Assembly: GCA_965240325.2 (NCBI GenBank)
Contig: OZ251238.1
Span: forward strand, 868,001-932,000
Length of the DNA stretch: 64,000 bases
Direction of reading: 5' to 3'
From: Rebecca billardiae RCC1528
Lineage: Eukaryota; Protista; Haptophyta
This document shows, in pieces, positions 4,308 through 42,751 of the stretch. The translations under genes were made by a program, and so were the position numbers. The notes beneath the pieces were generated by a model. The model had not been told where the DNA came from and did no database searches. It worked only from the letters and a program-made list of their open reading frames with translations. The first letter of the stretch is position 1; each line of letters opens with the position of its first letter.

Positions 4308-7187
4308 TCACGCGCCGTCCAGGTCGTCAGCCGGGGGCGTGCCCACCGACGTCATCGCGCCGTCGTGATCGCCCACGTCGCCGCTGCTCTGTTCGCCCGA
4401 GCTGCGGCGCGCGCCGCCGCCGCGGGCCGTCGCGGCGAGCCGCGCGCGCGTGCCGCCACCGCTCGCACTGCCTGTGCCGCTGCCGGCGCTGCCGGAGCGG
4501 CGCTCGCGCTCGGCAGGGCGCAGGGGCGGCGTGAGGGTGGCGCCCGCGGCGCCGGACGGCGAGCCGTCAGGCCTGTGCGGCCCTCCGACTTCCGAGGGCG
4601 CGTCCCTCGCCGTGGGCGACGGAGCGGGCGGCCCCCGCGAGCGCGGCGGCGGCGGCGGTCCCGGTGGCAGCGCCGTCGCACCGCCAGCGCCGCCGCTCCC
4701 GCCGGCCGGCCTGGCCGGCGCGGCGAGTGGCGCAAAGCCGCCTGGTGACGCGCCTGCCTCCGGCTGCTGCGCGGCGCGCGGGCCGCCGAGCAGTGGCGTG
4801 GCCACATCGCGCGCTGGCGTGAGCTCGCGGTGAGCGTCCGCCCGCGCCGCCGCGCGCGCGCGCGCGGCCGCTCCGGAGGCGGGCGTCATCGGCCGCTGCG
4901 CCGCCGAGCGCGGTGCCGCGGTGCCCGCCGCACCGCCGCCGCGCGCGCCGAGTCGCGCGGCGCGCTCCGCGTGCGCGCAGCAGCACAGCTGGCAGAGCAG
5001 TGCACGCGCGCTCGCCGCGACGCGCGCGAGCGCGGCGAGCAGCTGCGCGGCGAGCCGGCCGACGGGCGTGTGCCCGAGCCGCCGCGCCGCGCGCGCAAGC
5101 GCCACGCCGCCGTGCGCCGAGCGCGCGGCGGAGGAGTCGAGCCGCGCGATGGCTCGCTGCACGCGTGCCCCCATCAGCGGGCTGCGCTCGAACGGCGGGC
5201 GCTCGGGGCCGTACCGTGCGCCGCGGCGGCGATCGGCCGCGGGGCGGTGCAGGTACCCCCGGATGTACAGATCGCCGGACTCCGTCGTCACCGGGCGGAT
5301 GGACACGCCCGCGAGCGCGGCGCGCGCGCGCCCTTCCTCCAAGCTCGCACTGAGCGGCGCCGGCGATCGGAGAGCTGGAAGTCGGTCGGCAAGCGCTGGG
5401 CTCGGCGCGCCGCCGGAGCAGTGCTCGCCGCGCAGCATGGCGCGCGGCACGGCCTCCACGCTGCCCGGCGGCTCGTCGCCCGCGCCCTCGCCCGGCGCGC
5501 CCGCGCCCATGCCGGACGCGCCGCCGCCGCCGCCGCCGCGCCGTGGAATGGCGATGGGCGGTGAGCGCTGCGCGCTGAAGAGCCTTGCCTCGCGGCGCGC
5601 GGCGCGCCGCGCCGCCTTTGCGAGCGGCGAGCGCGCGGCGGGGCCCGGCGGCGGCAGCGGCACGGCGCCCACCCCGCCGAGCCCGAGCTCGGCGCTGCGC
5701 GCGAAGCGGCCGTGGCCGAGCGGCAGGAACGGCCCGGGGAAGCTGCGGAGCAGCGCCCAGCGCGTGCCAGCGAAGAAGGCATGCGATTTCACGTCGGCGC
5801 CGCCGCGCGGGCCGCTCCCGAGCCGCTCGGCGGGGCACTTCTCGAGCAGAGCGTCCACGAGCTCCCGCGCCGCGCGCGAGACCGGCGGCAGCCCGCTCCG
5901 CGCGGGCGTGGGCGGCGGCTCCCGCGGCGGCGCCGAGACGATCGCGCGGAGCAGCGTGCTCCGATCCGAGCCATCGAACGGCCTCTGCCCGTGGAGTGCC
6001 TCATAGAGGAAGCAACCCAGGGCCCACCAGTCTCGCTCCGGGTCCGCGCCCGACGCGGCGGCGGGCGGCGGGGTGGGCGGGGACGCGCGTGGCGTGCCGC
6101 CGCCGCCGCCGCCACCGCCGCCACCGCCGCCCTTGCCCCCGGGCCCACTGCCGCTGAGGATCGCGCGCAGCATCGACTGCCCAGGCGGCGCAGTCGGCGC
6201 CGGCGCCGCGGCGCCGCGCGCTCGCGCGGGCGGCGGCTCGGCCGCGGCGGGCGATGCGACCGGTGCGAGCTCTGCCGCGCGCTGGGCCGCGCCGGACAGC
6301 GAGGACGGGCCGGCTGGCGCGCCGCGCCCGCGACGCGGCATGGGGCTCGTCGCGGGCGGCTTCACCGCGCCCGCCACGCCCGCGCGCGCCGCCGCCGCCG
6401 AGCCCGCGCCACACCGCGCCGGCGGCGCGAGCGGCGGCGAGGGCTTCAGGTCAGCCGGCATGAAGCCGGGGGGCACGCTCAGCAGCACCTCGGGCGCGAG
6501 GTAGGGCAGGGTGCCCACGATGTACGGGCCCTCGGCGCGCATCCGCCTGGGCGTCGCGGGCAGCCGCGCCGGCCGCCGCGCGCCCAGCCGCAGCAGCCGG
6601 TCGCGCAGTCCGCGGAGGCCGCGGCGCGGCGGCGGCGGCGGCGGCGACTGCGCGTCGCGCGCCGCCGGCGGCGCGGCGAGCGCCGGGGGCGGCGGCTCGA
6701 CGATCGCGGCGAGGTCAAAGTCGGCGAGGCGCACGTGCCCCGCCGCCGAGAGCAGCACGTTCTCCGGCTTGAGGTCGCGGTAGATCACGCCGTGCACGTG
6801 CAGGAACTCGAGAGCGCACACGATCTCAGCCGCGTAGAACCGAGCGGCGCACTCGGGCATGCGCGCGTACGGCTGGCGCTGGAGCAGCTCGAAGAGGTCG
6901 CCGCCGGGCGCGTACTCGAGGACGAGGTACGCCCACCGCTCGTCCTGGAACGCGCTGCGCAGCCCGACCACGAACGGGTGCTCGATCATGCGCAGCACGC
7001 TCAGCTCGGTGAGCGCGCGCGACACGCGGCCGCGCCGCACGAGGTCGAGCTTGTCCATGCGCTTCACGGCGGCGAGCTCACCACTGTGGACGTGGCGCGC
7101 GAGGAAGACCGTGGCGATGTGCCCGTCGCCCAGGAGGCGCACGCGCTCCCACGCTTCCGAGGCCTCCGCCGCGCCGGCGGGCCGCAT
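4308..7187 (-). CDS. AGC-family Ser/Thr kinase with DFD motif (AGCVIII/phototropin-kinase/Fpk1-Nrc2-like), no LOV domains
   Basis: LGDGHIATVF, AAVKRM, RALTE, IYRDLKPEN, DFDLA, GTLPYLAPE, DWWALG, HAFFAGTRWALL. Long low-complexity insertions and C-terminal tail. Confidence 0.9.
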   Translation of the reverse strand: MRPAGAAEASEAWERVRLLGDGHIATVFLARHVHSGELAAVKRMDKLDLVRRGRVSRALTELSVLRMIEHPFVVGLRSAFQDERWAYLVLEYAPGGDLFELLQRQPYARMPECAARFYAAEIVCALEFLHVHGVIYRDLKPENVLLSAAGHVRLADFDLAAIVEPPPPALAAPPAARDAQSPPPPPPRRGLRGLRDRLLRLGARRPARLPATPRRMRAEGPYIVGTLPYLAPEVLLSVPPGFMPADLKPSPPLAPPARCGAGSAAAARAGVAGAVKPPATSPMPRRGRGAPAGPSSLSGAAQRAAELAPVASPAAAEPPPARARGAAAPAPTAPPGQSMLRAILSGSGPGGKGGGGGGGGGGGGTPRASPPTPPPAAASGADPERDWWALGCFLYEALHGQRPFDGSDRSTLLRAIVSAPPREPPPTPARSGLPPVSRAARELVDALLEKCPAERLGSGPRGGADVKSHAFFAGTRWALLRSFPGPFLPLGHGRFARSAELGLGGVGAVPLPPPGPAARSPLAKAARRAARREARLFSAQRSPPIAIPRRGGGGGGASGMGAGAPGEGAGDEPPGSVEAVPRAMLRGEHCSGGAPSPALADRLPALRSPAPLSASLEEGRARAALAGVSIRPVTTESGDLYIRGYLHRPAADRRRGARYGPERPPFERSPLMGARVQRAIARLDSSAARSAHGGVALARAARRLGHTPVGRLAAQLLAALARVAASARALLCQLCCCAHAERAARLGARGGGAAGTAAPRSAAQRPMTPASGAAARARAAARADAHRELTPARDVATPLLGGPRAAQQPEAGASPGGFAPLAAPARPAGGSGGAGGATALPPGPPPPPRSRGPPAPSPTARDAPSEVGGPHRPDGSPSGAAGATLTPPLRPAERERRSGSAGSGTGSASGGGTRARLAATARGGGARRSSGEQSSGDVGDHDGAMTSVGTPPADDLDGA

Positions 7188-7486
7188 CTTGATGAGCCGT
7201 GCGCCAAGCGCACCTGGAGCCGTGGAAAATGCGCGTCGGCGCGCAGTGCACGGAAAAACATCCCGCTCCAGGCTGGCGGCGGTTGGCAGGGATCCGGGCG
7301 CGCATCGGCATTCGGCAGTCGATCCGGCTGACGAGCGTGCGCAGCGGCTGCATCGGTTACAAAAGTGGTGCCCGCGCGCAAGTTGGGCTGTGCAAGCCGG
7401 CCGGTTGCACCTGCCGTCGAAGGTTGAGCGCGACGAGACGGACAGCCTCCACGGCGGTTAGAGTGCGCGTGAACGCTGGGCGGTCA

Positions 7487-9403
7487 ATGGAGACCGCAAC
7501 TGACGACACCTCGGCGATGGCGGGCGCTCACGCGGGCGCCGGTGCCACGCACGCGTCCTCGCACGCGTCTCCGACCGGCGCTGCCGCGCCGCCCGCCGGC
7601 CCCGCGCCTGCAACGCCGGGGCGGGCCGGCGCGCCGGCTGTTGACGGCGGCGCATCTCCCGCGTCGACGAGCCCGGCAGGCAGCAGCGTGCCGGGCGAGT
7701 CGGGGAAGAAGATCTCGTCGAACGTGAAGAAGGCGTGGTCCGCCGAGGAGGACGCCACGCTCCTACGCATGATCGAGGAGCACGGCGCGCAGAACTGGTC
7801 CACTATCGCGAGCCACCTCGAGGGCCGCGTGGGCAAGCAGTGCCGCGAGCGCTGGTTCAACCACCTGTGCCCCGAGGTGAAGAAGGGCGACTGGACGGCG
7901 GAGGAGGACCGTATCATCATGGAGTCGGTCAAGGAGCTCGGCACGTGCTGGTCCAAGATCGTCAAGCTGCTCCCTGGCCGCACGGACAACGCGATCAAGA
8001 ACCGGTACAACTCGACGATGCGCAAGAACCTGCGCGCGCTGCTCAAGCCCAAGCCCGCGCCGCCGGCGGAGGGCGAGGGCGAGGCCAAGCCGAAGAAGAA
8101 GAAGAAGAAGTCGAAGCCTGCCGCCGCCCGCGCCGCCGACGACGACGGCGCCGCCGCGCCCGCGGGCGCGGACGGCGCGGACGCTGAGTCGGCGGCCGCG
8201 CGCACGCCCGCGGGCGCCAAGCGCAAGGCCGGCGGCGCCGGCAGCAGCGGCAGCAAGGGGAAGGGGGCGAAGCGGCCCAAGTCGGCGGGCGCCTCCTCTG
8301 ACGGCGCCGCCTCGCCCAAGCCCTCCCCCGCCAGCGCCCTCGCCATCGCCATCTCCGCCGTCACCGAGGACGACGACGACGACAGCACGCACGTGCTGCC
8401 CGAGCTGTCGCGCGCACTCTACTCGCCCCTCTCCGAGCCGGGCTCCGCCAACAACCCGGAGGAGCGCGAGCGGCTGCGCGCGCTGCTGGACTGCTCGACG
8501 CCGCAGCTCGAGCTCGCGCCCGTCGGCGCGCGCTCCTCCACGCACGGCGGCGGGCTGCTCTCCTTCGGCCTCGGCTCCGTCAGCTCGGACGCGCACCGCA
8601 TGTCGACGGCCGTGAGCGGCCTCGGCGGCAGCGGCGGCGGCTTCCCCGGAGTCCACGAGAGCGACCTGCTCGACGCGGCGGACGCGTCGGCGGACACGGA
8701 CGAGCACGGGCTCGTCGTGATCGGCCGCTCGATGCAGCTCTGCTCCGGCACCTCGGACACCACCACGCGCACGCTCATGCTCTCGCCGTCCGACTCGCCG
8801 ACGACGATCCCAGCGGGCGCGATGCGGCGCGCGCCCGCGCCGAGCGCGTCGCAGCTCGGCCGCTCCGGCAAGGACACGAGCGCGGAGCTCGTCGTGCGCA
8901 TCCGGGGCAAGGGCCTGCCGCCGGTCGAGGCGCGCGGCAGCGTGCGCCGCGACTCGAGCACCGACGCCCTGCTCATGCCGCCGCCGCCAACGGGCGCGCG
9001 CCGGCAGCCGCGTGCGGGCGCGCCCACCCTCGCCGCGGGCTCCCTCCAGAACGAGGCCGACTCGGTCGCACGGCTGGCTGAGGACGAGGAGGAGCTGCGG
9101 AGGGCGGTGCAGAGCGTGCTGCAGGCGCGCGACGGCTCGGACGCGAAGAGCTACGACACGCGGCACGCGCCGCGCCCCGGAAAGATCGACCTCGCCGCGG
9201 CCGCGTCGGTTGGCGAGGCGCTCGGCCGCGCGCTCTACGGCAGCGGACGAGGCGCGCGGCTAACGCCCGGCGGCGCCGGCACGCCGCTCGACGAGCTGCG
9301 CGATATCGACTCGGCGGCGCTGGTCGAGTCGCTGATGCACTCGCCCGCGCTCACGCCGGGCGCGCTGCAGGCGCTCGAGAGGCACCTCGCGTTGGCGCAC
9401 TGA
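7487..9403 (+). CDS. R2R3 MYB transcription factor
   Basis: Two MYB repeats ([13 protein letters not shown]...[39 protein letters not shown]...[14 protein letters not shown]) and poly-Lys NLS. First ATG at 7487. Confidence 0.93.
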
Positions 9404-10070
9404 GAGCGAGCCGGCGCGGCCAGGGCGTGGCGCAGCGGCCGCGGGGCGAGTGGGACCGTGAGGGCCAGCTCGCGCCGCGGGCCGTGCGCGCGCGCGCGCG
9501 CGCGGAGCCCTGACTCGACGCGCGGCTCGGCTTCCGATGCCGCACTGGCTCCACGGCGCGTCCGTGCTGCGGTCCGCCCTCGACGGCCATCGCGAGACCG
9601 TGCCGCAGTCCGATGGCTCCAGCCAGCCCGGCGCCGCCGCTGGCCGGAAGCGGCCTCGATTGCCCGCTGGGCTCGCGTGCGGCCCGTGCCGTGGAGATGA
9701 CTTGGATCAGGCTGCGGCCATTCCGCATTCGTCAGAGCAGGTCATCTGACGACGGGCAGCAAAATCCGGTGATCAAACTTTTAGAAATGCAGCGGGTTTT
9801 TCACCGCTTTTTTGATGGCAAATGCCAAATGGCGCCGTTCGTGCCGAGGACCGGTGCCGAGCGAGCGTGAGATGAAAATGACTGCCAAGGTCCGGGTGGA
9901 AAGTTTCGGAGGAGTTCGACGAATCGACGGCGGATCCGGCAATCTCACGTGCGTCCGCACGGGCGGCAAACGGGCGCAAACCGTCCCGCGCGAACGCCTG
10001 ACTTCGGTCCACCACGAGAACCGACCGAGGAACAGTCCGCGCGCAACCCGTCCGCCCGCCCGCCCGCCCG

Positions 10071-36563: not shown

Positions 36564-39500
36564 TCACAGCAGCTCGACGCGGCCTGTATTGCGCCCCGCG
36601 GTCCGCCGCGCCCCGACCCGCCGCTCGCGCGCACCACCGCGCATGGCGCTCATCGCCGCCACCAGGGCGGCCACAACAGCCAGCGCGCCACCGGCCGCGC
36701 TGAGCGCCCACTCGCCGCCGGCGCGCCGAGCTGCGGCGTGGCCGTGGCGCGCGCGGCCGCGCGCGCGCACGTCATCCGGCAGCACAGAGTCCATCGCGTC
36801 CTGCAGCGTCGCCGCCTCGCCCAGCCACGACTTGGGCTTGTCGTAGAGCATCTTATCCGGCTTGTACCACTTGGAGCGTGAGCCGCAATACTCGCGAATC
36901 TCTGGGAGGCCGCCGCCGCCGTGCGCGAGGCACTCCACAATCACGTCGTCGTCGTGTGTCGTGCAGGACGGTGTTTCGTCGTCGGAGGACGTCTGCGAGT
37001 AGACCCACCGGTCGATGCCGCAGCGCAGCAGCGAGCCCTCCTTGCCGTCGCAGTTGGCGAACGCCAGGTTGATCGGCGTGGCGAGGGCCACCTTTGAGAG
37101 CGGGACCTCCTCCTTGCCGCGCGCGCTCACGTGCTGCGTGCCGTCCGCGTACCCCAGGCGGCGGCAGGCGACTTTGGCTGCGGGGAACTCGTTGCGCCGC
37201 GTGTGGAAGCGCGAGAAGCCCTCCTTGCACACGGTGCCCCACCGCCCGTCCTTATACAGGTACAGCGAGCCCTTCGGGTGCGCCGAGAGCCAGAGGTCGC
37301 CCTCGGTCGGGCGCGTGCAGTTGTGCTCGGCGGCCACCCGCGCGCCCTCGTACACTTCGAGAGTCACAGAGTCAAGCGTGGGCCCGCCGGCGCCGAGCAT
37401 TGACGGCACGGGCGGCGGCGGCGCGGCGGGCGGCCCTGGCTTCGTGCAACGCTCGCTGCTGCCCCAGTTGCCCAGGCCGATGTGCAGCGACTCTTGGATC
37501 GAGCAGCCCACGTCCAGCTGAGGGCGAGGGGCGCGCGGCGCGCGGGCGCGGCGCGCGGGCGCGGCGTCAGCGGGCGGGAGTGCAGCGGGGCGCTCCGCGG
37601 GGGCGGTGCGCTCGGGGTGGGCCCCGGCTGGACGCACGCGCGCGCGCGCGCGGTGGCGGCGCGGCCGCGCGCCCATGCCGTGCCCGCCGCCGCGCCGCGC
37701 GCACCGAGAGCAGAATGAGCGCGAGGATGATGAGCAGCAGCGCGCAGCACAGCGCCGCCAGCGCGTTGGAGCCGAGGCGGCGGCGCTTCTTCTGCAGCAG
37801 GAGCAGGTCAGCGGCCGGCGCGGCGGCGGGCGCGTCGACTAGCCATGACGCGTCCTCGTCGACCGCGGCCGCCGCCACCGACCTCGCTGCCGACGCCTCG
37901 TCGGCCTTGAGGAAGCCTGTACTCAGCGACATGGAGCGGGAGGCCGTCTGGGACGCCATCTGCGAGGCCATCTGCGACGGGTGCTCGGAGGGGTACTGCG
38001 AAGCGTACTGCGACGCCTGCTGCGACGCGTGCTGGGACGCGTGCTGCGTTGCGTAACCTGACATGGCGCGGGAGGCGAGCTCGGAGGGCGGCTCCGTCTT
38101 GATCTCGGGCGGCGGCGCGGCGGCGGGCGCCGGCGCGCGTGGCAGCGGCGGCGGAGGCTCGGCGGCCACGCTCGTCGCCACGGCGGCGGCAGCGGCGCCG
38201 GCGGCGGCGGCCGCGCCGAAGCCGACGCCGACCGCGGCATCCGCCTTGGCCGGGCTGGCGCTTGCCTGTGCGCCAAACGAGACCTGGGAGCCGCTCGGGC
38301 TCGGGTGCGGGCTCGCGCGCGCGTCGACGAGCAGCCCGGTGGGGCTGAACTCGCTCGCGTTGCTCACCGACTCGAGGTTGTCCTCCTCCGTCGCGGGCAG
38401 CAGGATGTCCAGCAGCAGCTTGGCGTGCCTCTGCCGCCCCGCGTCTGGATGCGACACCGCCATCTCGCGGAGCCGAGAGATCACCTCCTCCGTCGAGAGG
38501 CCGCGGAGCTCGACCCAGAGCGCGTCGATGCCGTCGGCGTCGTCGCCCGCCTCGGCGCGGCGCGGCGCGAGCAGCGAGCGGATCCGGTTCCGATCGGTCA
38601 CGTCTCGGCGCGAGCCCACCTCGTTCCGGACGTAGAGTTCGAAGGGCGTGCGGCCCGAGACGTCGGTCGCGTCGCGGCGCGCGCCGTTCTCGAGCATCAG
38701 CTCAAAGATGCCGACGGGGCAGTCCGCCTGCGCGCCGATGTGCAGCGCGGTGGCGCCGGTGACGTCCTTCGTGTTCACAAACTCCGAGACGTTCACGCCG
38801 TGCGACGCCGTCGCGAGCTGCAGCAGCAGCCGCGAGACGCCGAGGCGGCGCTGCGACACGGCGAGGTGAAGAGCGGTCGCTCGCTTCTGTGTCATCGCGC
38901 GCACGTCCGCGCCCGCCGAGACAAGGCGGCGCACGATCTTGGTGTGCCCGCACGCCGCCGCGAGGTGCAGCGACGTCCTGCGCCGGGGGCGGGGGCGGCG
39001 TGGCGTGGGCGCGGTTCGGGGCCGCCGCCGCGCGCATCGCGTGAGCGCGCGCGTGTGCGCCGCCCGCCCGCGGCGCGCGCGCGAGGCCGCGGCGCGGGGC
39101 AGTTCGCGGCGCGCGAGCGGCGGCGCACCAGCCCTTCACGTGCGTGAGCGACGTGTCCGCGCCGTAGTCGAGGAGCATCTCGACGGCGTTGTCGTGCCCG
39201 CGCCGCGCCGCCCACATCAGCGGCGTCCAGCCGTCGCGGCCGCGGCAGTCGATGTTGACGCCTTGCTTGATGAGCGTGAGCGCGCAGTTGATGTGCCCAT
39301 GCTCCGCCGCGTAGTGCAGCGCGAGCCAGCCGTCCGCGGAGGCGAGGTTGATGCTCTCCGGGTCCTCGTTGAGGCACCGCGTGAGCAGATCCACGTCGCC
39401 CAGGAAGGCCGCCTTGTGCACGCCCTCGAGGCGCGTGCCGCTGCTGGGCGACACGAGGCGGAAGGGCGACTGCTGGCCCGCCTGCCCGCTGCTCATCCGC

Positions 39501-39772
39501 GAGCCTCCGCCCACCGACGGCGACGAGGCCGCGCCACGGCTGGTGGCGCTCGTGTACGACTTGTTCGAGCGCGTCTCCTCCTCCTCCTCCGTCCGCGACG
39601 CCGCGAGCGTGCTCGCGAGCGCGTTGACGACGCGCGTGCTCACCTGCGGCTCCTCGGCAATCTGGACCTGCTTCGACGCGGCGAGGGTGCTTGCGAGGGC
39701 GTTGACGACGCGGTCGCTCACTTGCACCTCGCCAGCCTCATTCACAACGCGCGTCTCCGGTGCCCCCGACAT
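36564..39772 (-). CDS. Ankyrin-repeat - TM - SRCR - TM membrane protein, 3 exons (39772-39129, 38977-37705, 37517-36564)
   Basis: About 6 ankyrin repeats (GWLALHYAAEHGH, GWTPLMWAARRGH, GWTSLHLAAACGH, ATALHLAV, GATALHIGA). KKRRR+TM. SRCR motifs GSLYLYKDGRWGTVC, AAKVACRRLGY, CDGKEGSLLRC, CTTHDDDVIVEC. Second hydrophobic segment. Both introns are GT-AG and phase-compatible. Confidence 0.82.
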
Positions 39773-40165
39773 CGCGCTCGAGCTGGGCTGCGCAGCTGGG
39801 CGAAATCGTCGTCGCCGTGCGCGACGGGGTGCTCGAGGCCACTGCTTGCTCGAGCACTGGAGCTGCTCGCCCTGCCAGCTTCAAGCTCTCCCTTTTCTGT
39901 TTTGATTGTGGACGGGCCGGGGTGGTTTCACCTTTCCCGAGCTTGCGCCGCGGCACCGGTCGGGGCGCTCGACTTTTGGGGCCGATTATCATCCGGCGAG
40001 CGGCCGTGCGTCCGAGAGTCTGAAATACTCTGAACCATTGCACGCAAATAGACTGGCGTGCGATCTCCGACCAACATCTCGGGCCGGCCTGCGGGCCCTG
40101 CGAAACGTGATCGTTGTGCTCTCTTCTGGAAGTTCACGATGGAGCGCCTTGCCCGTGAAGCCGGC

Positions 40166-42751
40166 TCAACAGATGACGGCCCCGCACTCGACGAGGCGCA
40201 GGGCGAGCAGCTGCGGGCATGGGCCGCACGACTGATCGAGCACTACCTCGAGACTCGGGCTCAGCCGCGCACCGCTCTCGCCCAGCCAGCGCGCCGCGCC
40301 GCGCACGGCGCGCACGTCCGCCGCAGGCTCGGCCGTCGCGTCGCAGCCGTCGCCGCTGCCCGCCAGCGCGCGGCTGTTGACAGCGGCAGCGGTGAAGCAG
40401 AGCGCGAGGAAAGCGCGGGCCTGGAGCGCGCGCGGCATGCTCTGCGTGCCGTCGCCCCACGCGTCCGCTCCCGGCGTGACATCGAGCCGGTCCTGGGAGG
40501 CAGCCGACGCGGCGTGTGCGTCGATGCGGCGCGCCACGTCGGCAAACAGCTCGCGCAGGGTCGGCGGCTTGGTCGCGCGCGGCACCGGGCAGGCCCGAGT
40601 CGGGGCCGAGTTCTCCACGAACGCATCCTGGTCGTCCACCTCCATCGCGTCCACGGGCTGCTCTGCGGCTGGCCCGGAATCGTAGTGCAGCGGCTCGCAC
40701 GCGTCCATGTCGTCGTGTCCGCGCGGCGGTGACGCGCCTCCGAGCGGGCCCGCATCTCGCCCCTCGTCGCCGTCCGCGGCGTCCGGCGCGGGATCGCCGC
40801 CGCACGTGCCGCCTGCGCCGTCGCCGAGCGCATCGCCAGCGCACACGTCGAGCAGGAGGTCGTCGGCGGCACACCCGTCGGCGACGTGCGCGCCGCCCTC
40901 CCAAGACAGCATGCCGTGGCCGGACGGTGCGATGCCGTACTTGGCGCGCGCGCCGAGCAGGGCGAGATTGCGAGGCTTGCCGCCGTCCGAGCCGTACAGC
41001 AGCACCGACGTGTCGAAGAGGGTCGACATCGCCGGCGCGGTCGTCTCGCCGCCCTCGACAGGACGGCCGCCGCCGGATCGCCGCGCGCCGCCCGCGCCGC
41101 CGGCCTTCACCGCCGAGCCGTCGAGCTGCGGCAGGTGCATCGTGAGGACGCGCACCCGCGCGTCCGCCACGCCGCGGTCGAGCGACTCGACCGCGCTCTG
41201 CTCGTCGCGGCGCGCAGCGGGGAGCACGAGGCGCTCGAGCACGAGCTGGCGCGCGTCGCGTACGAGCACTGGGCGCACGCGCGTGGGCGGCGGCTTGCGC
41301 GGCGGGAAGGCGAGAAGCCGCGCCGTGGGCGGATGGAGCACACTCAGCAGCAGCTCTTGCTCATCCTCGCGCTCGGAGCCCGCGCCGTCGCATGCGCGCG
41401 CTGGGCCATCGTCGTCGCGCGACGGCCCTGGGCCGTCGGGCAGCAGAGGCAGGTCGGCACGCGCGTCGTGGGCGGCTGGGAGCGTCGTGCGTGCGCCCAT
41501 GGACGTCTCCCCCGAGCCGGCACCGCGCGTGGGCTCGTACGGCCCCACATCCTCGTCGAGCGCGCACAGGTCGAGGAGCGCGCGCCGCGGCTGCGCGCCC
41601 GAGCGCTCGCCTGCACGCCCGTCCGCACCGGGTGAGGTGAAGGCGACGAGGCGGGCGGCGTCTTCGACTCCCGCGGCCGTGGCGGCCTGCTGGGAGAGAC
41701 CGTCCGCCTGGCCGCAGGGCGGCACAACCGAGGCCGGGCATGCGCACCCACTGATGTCAATAGCGCCGCAGCTGTCGTCTCCGGTGCGGTCGCATGCAAG
41801 CATCTCCACGTCCCGGTCCGCATCATTGGCGGGCGAGCACGCGCCCGGGCCGCCCATGTCGATCTCGATGCCGTCGGCACCCATGTCGCCGCCGAGGTCG
41901 AGCAGCGAGGTGTGCTCGTAGCCGTCGTAGCGCCCCGCTCCGAGCGCGGCATCGTGCCACGCCTCCGCGCGCTGCTGCGGCGGGGTCGCGAGCAGCGCCG
42001 CAATGCCACCCTGACCCTCTGCGCCCTCCTCCTCCTCCGCCCACGGCGCGAGGCACGCGATCGCTGCGTCCAGCAGCTCGGACGCTTGCGCAGGCGGCGA
42101 GTCCGTCTCCTCGGGCCCTTCGATAGACGTGCCCGCGGCCAGACCTCCGAGCGCCGCGTGTGCGGCTCCTGGCGTCTGCAGCCCGCGCTTCTGCGACGGC
42201 GGCGTCTCCGATTCGGGAGCGCTCGTCGCTCGGTCGGTCGTGGGCGAGCTCTGCTCGCCGAGCCACGCGACGAAGGCGGCTGGCGGGGCGCCGCGACGAG
42301 CGAGGTCGCGCAGCTCGTCGGCAGCTGCCGTCCAACGCGCGGGCAGCTCGGCCCGTGGCTGCGCCGTCGCCGCTTGCTCGTCAACGCGCTCGAGCGTGCG
42401 CGCGCGCTTTGACGCATGCGCGTCAGCGGTGCTCGGCTTCTTTGCGCGCGCGACGGCGGCGGACGTGTCGTTGGCGAGCTCGCTCTGCATGCACTGGATG
42501 AGCTGAGAGCGAACCGTCACTTGGTCTCCCGCGCGCTCGAACCAGTCGGCGTTCCGCTGCGCGCCGTCGTCTGCTGGCTCGTCGCCGTCGACGTCGTCGA
42601 GGACGGGCTGCGCCGCCCACGCGGCGAAGCGGAAGGGCGCCTTCTTGCCGCGCTTGTCCAGCTCCGAGCGGACGTCGGTCAGTGCGTACTGCCCATCGTC
42701 GCCGACGCGCCGGAAGCGCCGGCTGAGCGAGATGTGTGGCGGCTGCTGCAT
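40166..42751 (-). CDS. Hypothetical acidic/low-complexity 861-aa protein (possible kleisin-like C-terminal winged helix)
   Basis: Long ATG-initiated ORF with host codon bias. C-terminal TLRELFADV...QARAFLALCFTA loosely resembles kleisin C-termini. Confidence 0.6.
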   Translation of the reverse strand: MQQPPHISLSRRFRRVGDDGQYALTDVRSELDKRGKKAPFRFAAWAAQPVLDDVDGDEPADDGAQRNADWFERAGDQVTVRSQLIQCMQSELANDTSAAVARAKKPSTADAHASKRARTLERVDEQAATAQPRAELPARWTAAADELRDLARRGAPPAAFVAWLGEQSSPTTDRATSAPESETPPSQKRGLQTPGAAHAALGGLAAGTSIEGPEETDSPPAQASELLDAAIACLAPWAEEEEGAEGQGGIAALLATPPQQRAEAWHDAALGAGRYDGYEHTSLLDLGGDMGADGIEIDMGGPGACSPANDADRDVEMLACDRTGDDSCGAIDISGCACPASVVPPCGQADGLSQQAATAAGVEDAARLVAFTSPGADGRAGERSGAQPRRALLDLCALDEDVGPYEPTRGAGSGETSMGARTTLPAAHDARADLPLLPDGPGPSRDDDGPARACDGAGSEREDEQELLLSVLHPPTARLLAFPPRKPPPTRVRPVLVRDARQLVLERLVLPAARRDEQSAVESLDRGVADARVRVLTMHLPQLDGSAVKAGGAGGARRSGGGRPVEGGETTAPAMSTLFDTSVLLYGSDGGKPRNLALLGARAKYGIAPSGHGMLSWEGGAHVADGCAADDLLLDVCAGDALGDGAGGTCGGDPAPDAADGDEGRDAGPLGGASPPRGHDDMDACEPLHYDSGPAAEQPVDAMEVDDQDAFVENSAPTRACPVPRATKPPTLRELFADVARRIDAHAASAASQDRLDVTPGADAWGDGTQSMPRALQARAFLALCFTAAAVNSRALAGSGDGCDATAEPAADVRAVRGAARWLGESGARLSPSLEVVLDQSCGPCPQLLALRLVECGAVIC

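Follow-up and report, generated by a model that had tools for sequence, protein, structure and literature searches.

A three-exon algal gene for an ankyrin-repeat protein with an SRCR domain between two predicted membrane helices

Does the minus strand between 39772 and 36564 of a 64,000-nucleotide stretch from Rebecca billardiae RCC1528 (contig OZ251238.1, positions 868,001 to 932,000; hereafter the window, to which all coordinates refer unless another contig is named) encode a single protein that joins ankyrin repeats to a scavenger receptor cysteine-rich (SRCR) domain, and if so, what might such a protein do? The window has ~70% G+C and carries spliced genes, and is hence eukaryotic. Three open stretches lie at this locus in three different frames, and splicing joins all of them. 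Based on detailed analyses of the splice signals, codon composition and domains, combined with comparisons to orthologous transcripts, we conclude that the ankyrin-SRCR gene is one intact three-exon gene with a product of ~956 amino acids (aa), and that it represents a new architecture variant within the known SRCR superfamily, conserved in a small lineage-restricted family. We propose, with a probability of about 0.6, that the product operates as a two-pass hairpin, a non-enzymatic membrane adaptor. The features are listed below with their supporting evidence; P numbers denote proteins recovered in our database searches, and TM1 and TM2 the two predicted transmembrane helices.

39129-39772, minus strand: exon 1, with the ATG at 39772 (open reading frame (ORF), Pfam, G+C at third codon positions (GC3), 70% identity to P0004 residues 87-201)
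38978-39128, minus strand: intron 1, 151 nucleotides (nt), GTGCGC..GCGCAG, splitting a Trp codon as TG/G
37705-38977, minus strand: exon 2 (ORF, Pfam, GC3, hydropathy, 56% identity to P0004 residues 203-394)
37518-37704, minus strand: intron 2, 187 nt, GTGCGC..CCTCAG, phase 0
36564-37517, minus strand: exon 3, including the TGA stop (ORF, Pfam, hydropathy, alignment with P0004)
38620-39430, minus strand: ankyrin array, spanning intron 1 (Pfam, repeats counted by eye)
37705-37791, minus strand: KKRRR and TM1 (hydropathy; kept in P0004 and P0007)
37314-37322, minus strand: N-C-T glycosylation sequon, just before the SRCR domain
36930-37274, minus strand: SRCR domain, exon-3 residues 82-196, six-cysteine group A-like (Pfam and fold)
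36645-36716, minus strand: TM2 (hydropathy; position kept in P0002, P0003, P0004 and P0098)
36567-36644, minus strand: Arg-rich C-terminal tail of ~26 aa, ending ELL-COOH (family alignment)

Exon 1 encodes a variable N-terminus, the conserved motif SPFRLVSPSSG, ankyrin repeats 1-3 and the terminal TG of the split Trp codon. In exon 2, ankyrin repeats 4-6 with their cap are followed by a helical segment that is conserved, the low-complexity linker (Ala/Pro/(xASQ)n), KKRRR and TM1, and exon 3 continues with a Cys pair, a Pro-rich spacer, the sequon, the SRCR domain, a CGS stalk, TM2 and a basic tail ending in ELL. The signals of both introns fit this genome, since a class II ribonucleotide reductase gene of this window has a homology-defined intron with similar ones (GTACGC..GCGCAG). 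As long open frames are cheap at ~70% G+C, GC3 was measured in 150-nt windows in all three minus-strand frames. It amounts to 0.90-0.98 in the exon-1 frame from ~39740 to 39140, to 0.88-0.98 in the exon-2 frame from ~38960 to 37760 and to 0.86-0.98 in the exon-3 frame from 37520 to ~36860, so that the best frame switches at both introns, and GC3 periodicity is absent from the 5' flank (39800-40100). The exon-2 values stay high through the whole low-complexity linker, which argues that translation runs through the linker in the frame of the ankyrin repeats.

Over the last ~200 nt, an Arg/Ala-rich region up to and through TM2, GC3 alone cannot pick the frame, which is fixed by conservation. Within this region, two frames are inseparable by GC3 at ~36717-36780, and a GTGCGC motif resembles a splice donor. 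A third short intron before TM2 (GTGCGC at ~36780, with candidate acceptors 40 and 71 nt downstream) was considered and rejected, as both lengths break the TM2/ELL frame. The same positions encode the Arg-rich stretch VRARGRARHGHAAARRAGG, directly before TM2 and on its predicted exoplasmic side.

Relatives were sought with exon 3. In a word-index search the sole match was P0001 (278 aa), the ORF call of the window itself, and no relatives appeared in the 174-555 aa band. HMMER against 1.84 billion representatives gave 322 proteins at E up to 0.001, three of them below 1e-30: P0001 itself, P0002 (409 aa, an ORF call) and P0003 (362 aa), the last two consisting of the SRCR-TM2-ELL half only. Most informative are P0004 (1013 aa; ankyrin repeats at 106-231, SRCR at 746-868), which originates from the MMETSP transcriptome assemblies, and its cluster mate P0151, likewise from MMETSP. 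Both carry the ankyrin array, KKRR and TM1, the sequon, SRCR, CGS, TM2 and the ELL end colinearly on one transcript.

P0004 is colinear with all three exons, with no indel at either junction. Exon-1 residues 100-214 and exon-2 residues 1-177 align with the two P0004 segments given in the list, the KKRR-helix region aligns near P0004 640-655, and exon-3 residues 23-225 match P0004 689-908 at 34% identity. Over the intron 1 junction P0004 reads continuously as HVKG-W-T(A/S)LHLAAACGH, its W202 corresponding to the split codon. KKRR and the first Cys after TM1 lie 30 residues apart in the window model, in P0004 and in P0151, and the splice between 37705 and 37517 hence reproduces the orthologous mRNA exactly. 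A further relative, P0007 (555 aa, from a Logan assembly), contains ankyrin repeats, TM1 and SRCR within one sequence and is cut at both ends, starting inside ankyrin repeat 4 and stopping before TM2. P0007 is most likely one uninterrupted open frame, from an organism with no intron between TM1 and the SRCR part, since other Logan and ORF-call entries (P0001 and P0002) begin inside introns.

These comparisons bear directly on the alternative that the splice is an artefact and that the locus holds two genes, the first encoding a tail-anchored ankyrin protein that terminates at the 37567 stop and the second, downstream of it, the SRCR part. Such an arrangement would agree with the unspliced exon-2 frame, which is open to 37567, and with the ease with which long frames arise at this base composition. 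However, the exon-3 frame has neither a signal peptide nor a plausible start upstream of 37517, and past 37705 the GC3 of the exon-2 frame falls from ~0.9 to 0.82, 0.74 and 0.68, although the GC-rich intron 2 is itself not frame-discriminating. Moreover, orthologous transcripts join both halves with the same junction length, and P0007 unites them in one protein. We therefore regard two separate genes as extremely improbable.

Pfam searches, alignments and folds were made exon by exon. In exon 1, Ank_2 scores 70.7 bits, Ank_4 67 and Ank 62.7, and in the N-terminal part of exon 2 Ank scores 52.3 and Ank_2 50.7 bits; the tandem 33-residue repeats thus lie above the Pfam cut-offs. Counted by eye, the array comprises six repeats and a C-terminal capping half-repeat, with intron 1 splitting repeat 4. 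The SRCR domain (PF00530) scores 42.3 bits against a cut-off of 26.1 and covers profile positions 8-99 of 100, and the same match is found in a search of the genome (a 72 Mb assembly of 41 contigs). All six cysteines of the group A pattern are present (WGTVC97, VAC118RRLGY, C156DGKEG, LLRC166, SC185TTH and VEC196); the segment between the helices contains ten cysteines, six of them at these canonical positions. Among solved structures, SR-A1 (6j02, E 3.8e-5), SCARA5, M2BP and CD5L have the SRCR domains nearest in sequence. An AlphaFold2 model of exon-3 residues 45-235, computed with thirty sequences, reached a predicted local distance difference test (pLDDT) of 70, with a core at 80-92, and a predicted template-modelling score of 0.69. 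In Foldseek all top matches of this model are SRCR domains (M2BP, MARCO, CD163, neurotrypsin, SCARA5 and SCARA1) at probability 1.0 and a TM-score of 0.67-0.78 on target length. The SRCR assignment is thus secure, being carried by profile, cysteines and fold alike.

TM1 corresponds to exon-2 residues 401-424 (Kyte-Doolittle 3.25) and TM2 to exon-3 residues 268-291 (score 2.1). As KKRRR directly precedes TM1 and an acidic/neutral flank follows, TM1 is predicted to be a signal anchor with KKRRR on the N-side and a cytosolic N-terminus. The ankyrin array and a disordered linker of ~280 aa would then be cytosolic, and a loop of ~265 aa with the ten cysteines, the sequon and the SRCR domain would lie outside the cell or in the lumen, before TM2 returns the tail to the cytosol. 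Conservation of the sequon, which as N-C-[ST] is shared by the window protein and all of the four distinct orthologue sequences and is missing from the own-genome paralogue P0098, speaks for exposure of the SRCR loop to the secretory lumen. In the orthologues, the tails after TM2 are strongly basic and the flanks before it are not, supporting a cytosolic C-terminus. Two other readings of the hydrophobic segments were rejected: the Ala/Gly-rich hydropathy peak (~1.6-1.8) at exon-2 residues 247-272 in the linker was read as low complexity rather than as a membrane helix, and the conserved charged tail of ~26 aa after TM2 argues against a glycosylphosphatidylinositol signal in its place.

The original prediction, made from the letters of the window, thus holds for the gene and its layout. 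Both introns and the in-phase three-exon splice are exactly as it had proposed, in view of the sequence signals, the GC3 frame switches and the colinear P0004. Pfam and hydropathy bear out its domain order of ankyrin repeats, linker, KKRRR with a transmembrane helix, SRCR and a second helix, and its hairpin membrane protein stands as a predicted topology, derived from hydropathy and charge flanks. An SRCR match by profile or structure, which it had required, was found by both (42.3 bits; SRCR domains in Foldseek).

In a family alignment of seven sequences, including P0098, C97, C118, C156, C166, C185, C196 and C211 are invariant in all seven, as are the C211-G-S motif after the SRCR domain and the lead-in GD.WLS..P.G.L. 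The juxtamembrane Cys pair occurs in the window protein, P0002 and P0004. All sequences that reach the C-terminus have a hydrophobic helix followed by a basic tail and end in ELL, EML or ALL.

The combination of ankyrin repeats with SRCR is rare, and the layout seems to be undescribed. Among the 150 best SRCR relatives from the 1.84 billion representatives, ankyrin repeats are confined to this small family. When exons 1 and 2 were compared to 153 fetched proteins, the only matches were P0004, P0151, P0152 and P0007. A word-index search with full-length P0004 was dominated by generic multi-ankyrin proteins and gave neither new members nor an annotated model of the window gene; among the 120 ankyrin matches listed, P0004 alone carried PF00530. 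The genome has at least 16 SRCR matches, and searches of it revealed no close paralogue of either the ankyrin or the SRCR half. Only generic SRCR clusters, with scores of 0.75-0.80, were found in the ESM Atlas. Our literature searches found no description of SRCR combined with ankyrin, which is also nowhere mentioned in a survey covering 1747 SRCR genes of metazoans (PMC10855680).

The membrane-bound SRCR part is found again elsewhere in the genome. A minus-strand gene at G000:C15:1533150-1536392 (L018) consists of a PX exon (Pfam 25.6 bits, cut-off 21.6), an intron, a hydrophobic helix of 22 residues and an SRCR domain, after which come a C-terminal helix and a tail with HELL at its end. It shares the hydrophobic helix, SRCR domain, C-terminal TM and ELL end with the window gene and differs in having a phosphoinositide-binding PX head in place of ankyrin repeats, and the two SRCR domains are distantly related (E 7.8e-4). 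The SRCR paralogue nearest to the window gene, at 34% identity, belongs to a very large frame at G000:C5:1368000-1377999 (L028, minus strand, 5076-9824), a type I protein with repeated extracellular modules and RCC1-like repeats. Past an Arg-rich read-through that resembles an intron, it ends in SRCR, a helix and a basic tail finishing in ARALL; P0098 is an ORF call from this gene. The cassette of TM, SRCR, TM and ELL is thus reused, twice with cytosolic docking heads (ankyrin repeats for protein, PX for lipid) and not with enzymes. The original prediction's impression of an unfamiliar architecture has held up, as ankyrin and SRCR are confined together to a small family among the 153 proteins and we found no published description; the protein is no lone oddity, given the conserved family and the recurring cassette.

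Haptophyte-like algae may have a modular set of hairpin SRCR-loop proteins, with one exoplasmic cassette and interchangeable ankyrin or PX heads, a possibility that we consider doubtful. If true, it would constitute a receptor or cargo-adaptor system not recognised before, through which SRCR contacts in the lumen or outside the cell are tied to scaffolding in the cytosol and to membranes defined by phosphoinositides. A different SRCR arrangement was observed at G000:C30:1081338-1088027 (L003, L004), where two neighbouring genes each encode an N-terminal hydrophobic helix and two SRCR domains; the pair resembles the outcome of a tandem duplication, the protein concerned having two SRCR domains and being membrane-bound or secreted.

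How does the window protein compare to known membrane proteins with these domains? Class A scavenger receptors (SR-AI/MSR1, MARCO and SCARA5) share with the predicted topology a cytosolic N-terminus, a signal-anchor TM and one exoplasmic six-cysteine SRCR domain. Their cytosolic tail, however, is short, their stalk is collagenous or a coiled coil and serves trimerisation, they have one TM, and their cation site is conserved, whereas the window protein has a predicted cytosolic part of ~640 aa with six to seven ankyrin repeats, a second TM and a predicted cytosolic ELL tail, and does not keep the cation site. As to the type II orientation of the class, the charge flanks of TM1 predict an N-in placement, and a second TM follows the SRCR domain. 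As to the stalk, no collagen or coiled-coil family was detected in the Pfam scan of exon 3, and the spacer of 80 aa has no Gly-X-Y run.

Among ankyrin proteins, Notch is a type I protein with EGF/LNR modules, a RAM region and proteolytic release. It likewise couples an extracellular Cys-rich module across the membrane to a cytosolic ankyrin array, but EGF/LNR and RAM are absent here according to Pfam, and the ankyrin repeats are N-terminal. ANK-TM proteins of the plant ACD6/ITN1 type have a multi-helix PGG domain and no folded ectodomain. Cytosolic N-terminal ankyrin repeats followed by membrane helices are common to both, but exon 2 has no Pfam match to PGG at E up to 1, and just one helix precedes the ectodomain. 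The window protein is therefore neither a Notch-type nor a plant PGG-type ankyrin membrane protein. Hepsin/TMPRSS and factor I resemble it in having a membrane-proximal SRCR domain without the cation residues (PMC7043408), hepsin also having the N-in (type II) orientation that is predicted here; there the SRCR domain supports a protease domain, whereas here there is no other ectodomain.

The cation site bears on the question of microbe sensing. Ligand binding by the SRCR domains of SALSA, MARCO, CD6 and CD163 requires a dual cation site, formed in SALSA SRCR8 by D1019, D1020 and E1086 and by D1058, D1059 and N1081, while in hepsin and factor I the cation-site residues are not conserved and no ligand binding is known (PMC7043408). 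By alignment, the window protein does not possess this dual site: only the acid equivalent to E1086 is retained, as D190/D191, and the Asn position is occupied by S in the window protein and K in the orthologues. The remaining SALSA residues we take to lie in the VCDD and LDD motifs. At VCDD the window protein has KE, where relatives have VH, EM or QA, and at LDD it has AF, where they have MW or QW. Since the acidic cation residues are not kept, the canonical SRCR binding mode is unavailable.

This weakens the idea of an innate-immune pattern-recognition receptor, in which the SRCR domain would bind microbial surfaces, as in MARCO, SR-A or DMBT1, and the ankyrin array would relay the signal. 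The closeness of the SRCR domain to SR-A1 and SCARA5 in sequence and to M2BP and MARCO in fold, together with an N-in orientation and exoplasmic SRCR like those of SR-A and MARCO, would suit such a receptor. Nevertheless, the window protein has KE/AF/S, and orthologues have VH/MW/K, in place of the acidic cluster, Pfam reveals neither a multimerising collagenous or coiled-coil stalk nor a known signalling domain, and the gene is present as a single copy per genome with no close paralogue, unlike expanded immune receptor families. We hence hold this function to be improbable. Specifically, no death, TIR, kinase or other known signalling domain or enzyme was found in the Pfam scan, and the coupling of microbe or ligand sensing to an ankyrin signalling platform, as put forward in the original prediction, is left unsupported, with the cation-site acids lost and a signalling domain missing. 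Alternatively, the SRCR domain may have a purely structural role next to the membrane, as a stalk or for dimerisation, like its counterparts in hepsin, TMPRSS and factor I, and the protein may be a membrane-anchored ankyrin scaffold of an organelle or the cortical cytoskeleton. Loss of the cation site, shared with hepsin and factor I (PMC7043408), agrees with this view, as does the RCC1-type protein of contig C5, in which an SRCR and TM module sits next to the membrane behind an unrelated ectodomain. In the window protein, however, SRCR is the sole folded ectodomain, so that a stalk would bear nothing, and the family-specific extra Cys pair, sequon and CGS motif are kept, suggesting that the SRCR loop has a function of its own. 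A purely structural role thus appears rather unlikely.

For the hairpin adaptor that we favour, we propose the following mechanism. The SRCR loop would contact an exoplasmic or lumenal partner through some part of its surface outside the canonical cation site, proteins of the cytoskeleton, of trafficking or of signalling, for example, would be recruited in the cytosol by the ankyrin array, and the C-terminal ELL may serve as a sorting signal. Occurrence of the same cassette behind a PX head suggests that it works in the plasma-membrane/endosomal system.

Several points weigh against this proposal. The transcripts behind the gene model come from relatives. The hairpin topology is predicted from hydropathy and charge bias, and the window protein is Arg-rich on both sides of TM2, so that the positive-inside rule is not decisive for this helix. 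The fold of the whole exon-3 product, computed with seven sequences, is poor (pLDDT 37.5). A sorting role for ELL is a guess from its conservation, and the function of the ankyrin-SRCR protein as such is one that we infer. As to rarity, the divergent SRCR query covered 322 proteins, and combinations of ankyrin repeats with a very different SRCR domain may exist elsewhere.

To our knowledge, SRCR proteins have been studied almost solely in animals, where they are scavenger and immune receptors that are either secreted or cross the membrane once. An algal family in which one SRCR domain is looped between two helices and attached to a large cytosolic ankyrin platform extends the known uses of the SRCR fold, and the pair of ankyrin and PX genes provides a handle on SRCR roles in unicellular phototrophs, for which contact with the surface or scale matrix, capture of endocytic cargo and contact with microbes are candidates. 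The value of the locus is that of a domain-architecture lead, rather than the discovery of a new mechanism.

Two repeated segments of the coding sequence were also noted. In the N-terminus, at exon-1 residues 16-59 (39598-39727), a motif of ~18 residues is tandemly duplicated, so that RVVNALASTLAAS occurs twice, the copies being VQVSDRVVNALASTLAAS and PQVSTRVVNALASTLAAS; the duplication is not kept in P0004, while the SPFRLVSPSSG motif that follows it is. In the cytosolic linker, exon-2 residues ~306-342 (~37950-38060) form the four-residue repeats HASQ, QASQ, YASQ and MASQ, which are in frame (GC3 ~0.9) and missing from the orthologue. Upstream on the minus strand, an open frame of 861 aa with low-complexity Ala/Gly/Asp-rich sequence (40166-42751) has its end 393 nt upstream of the ankyrin-SRCR start codon.

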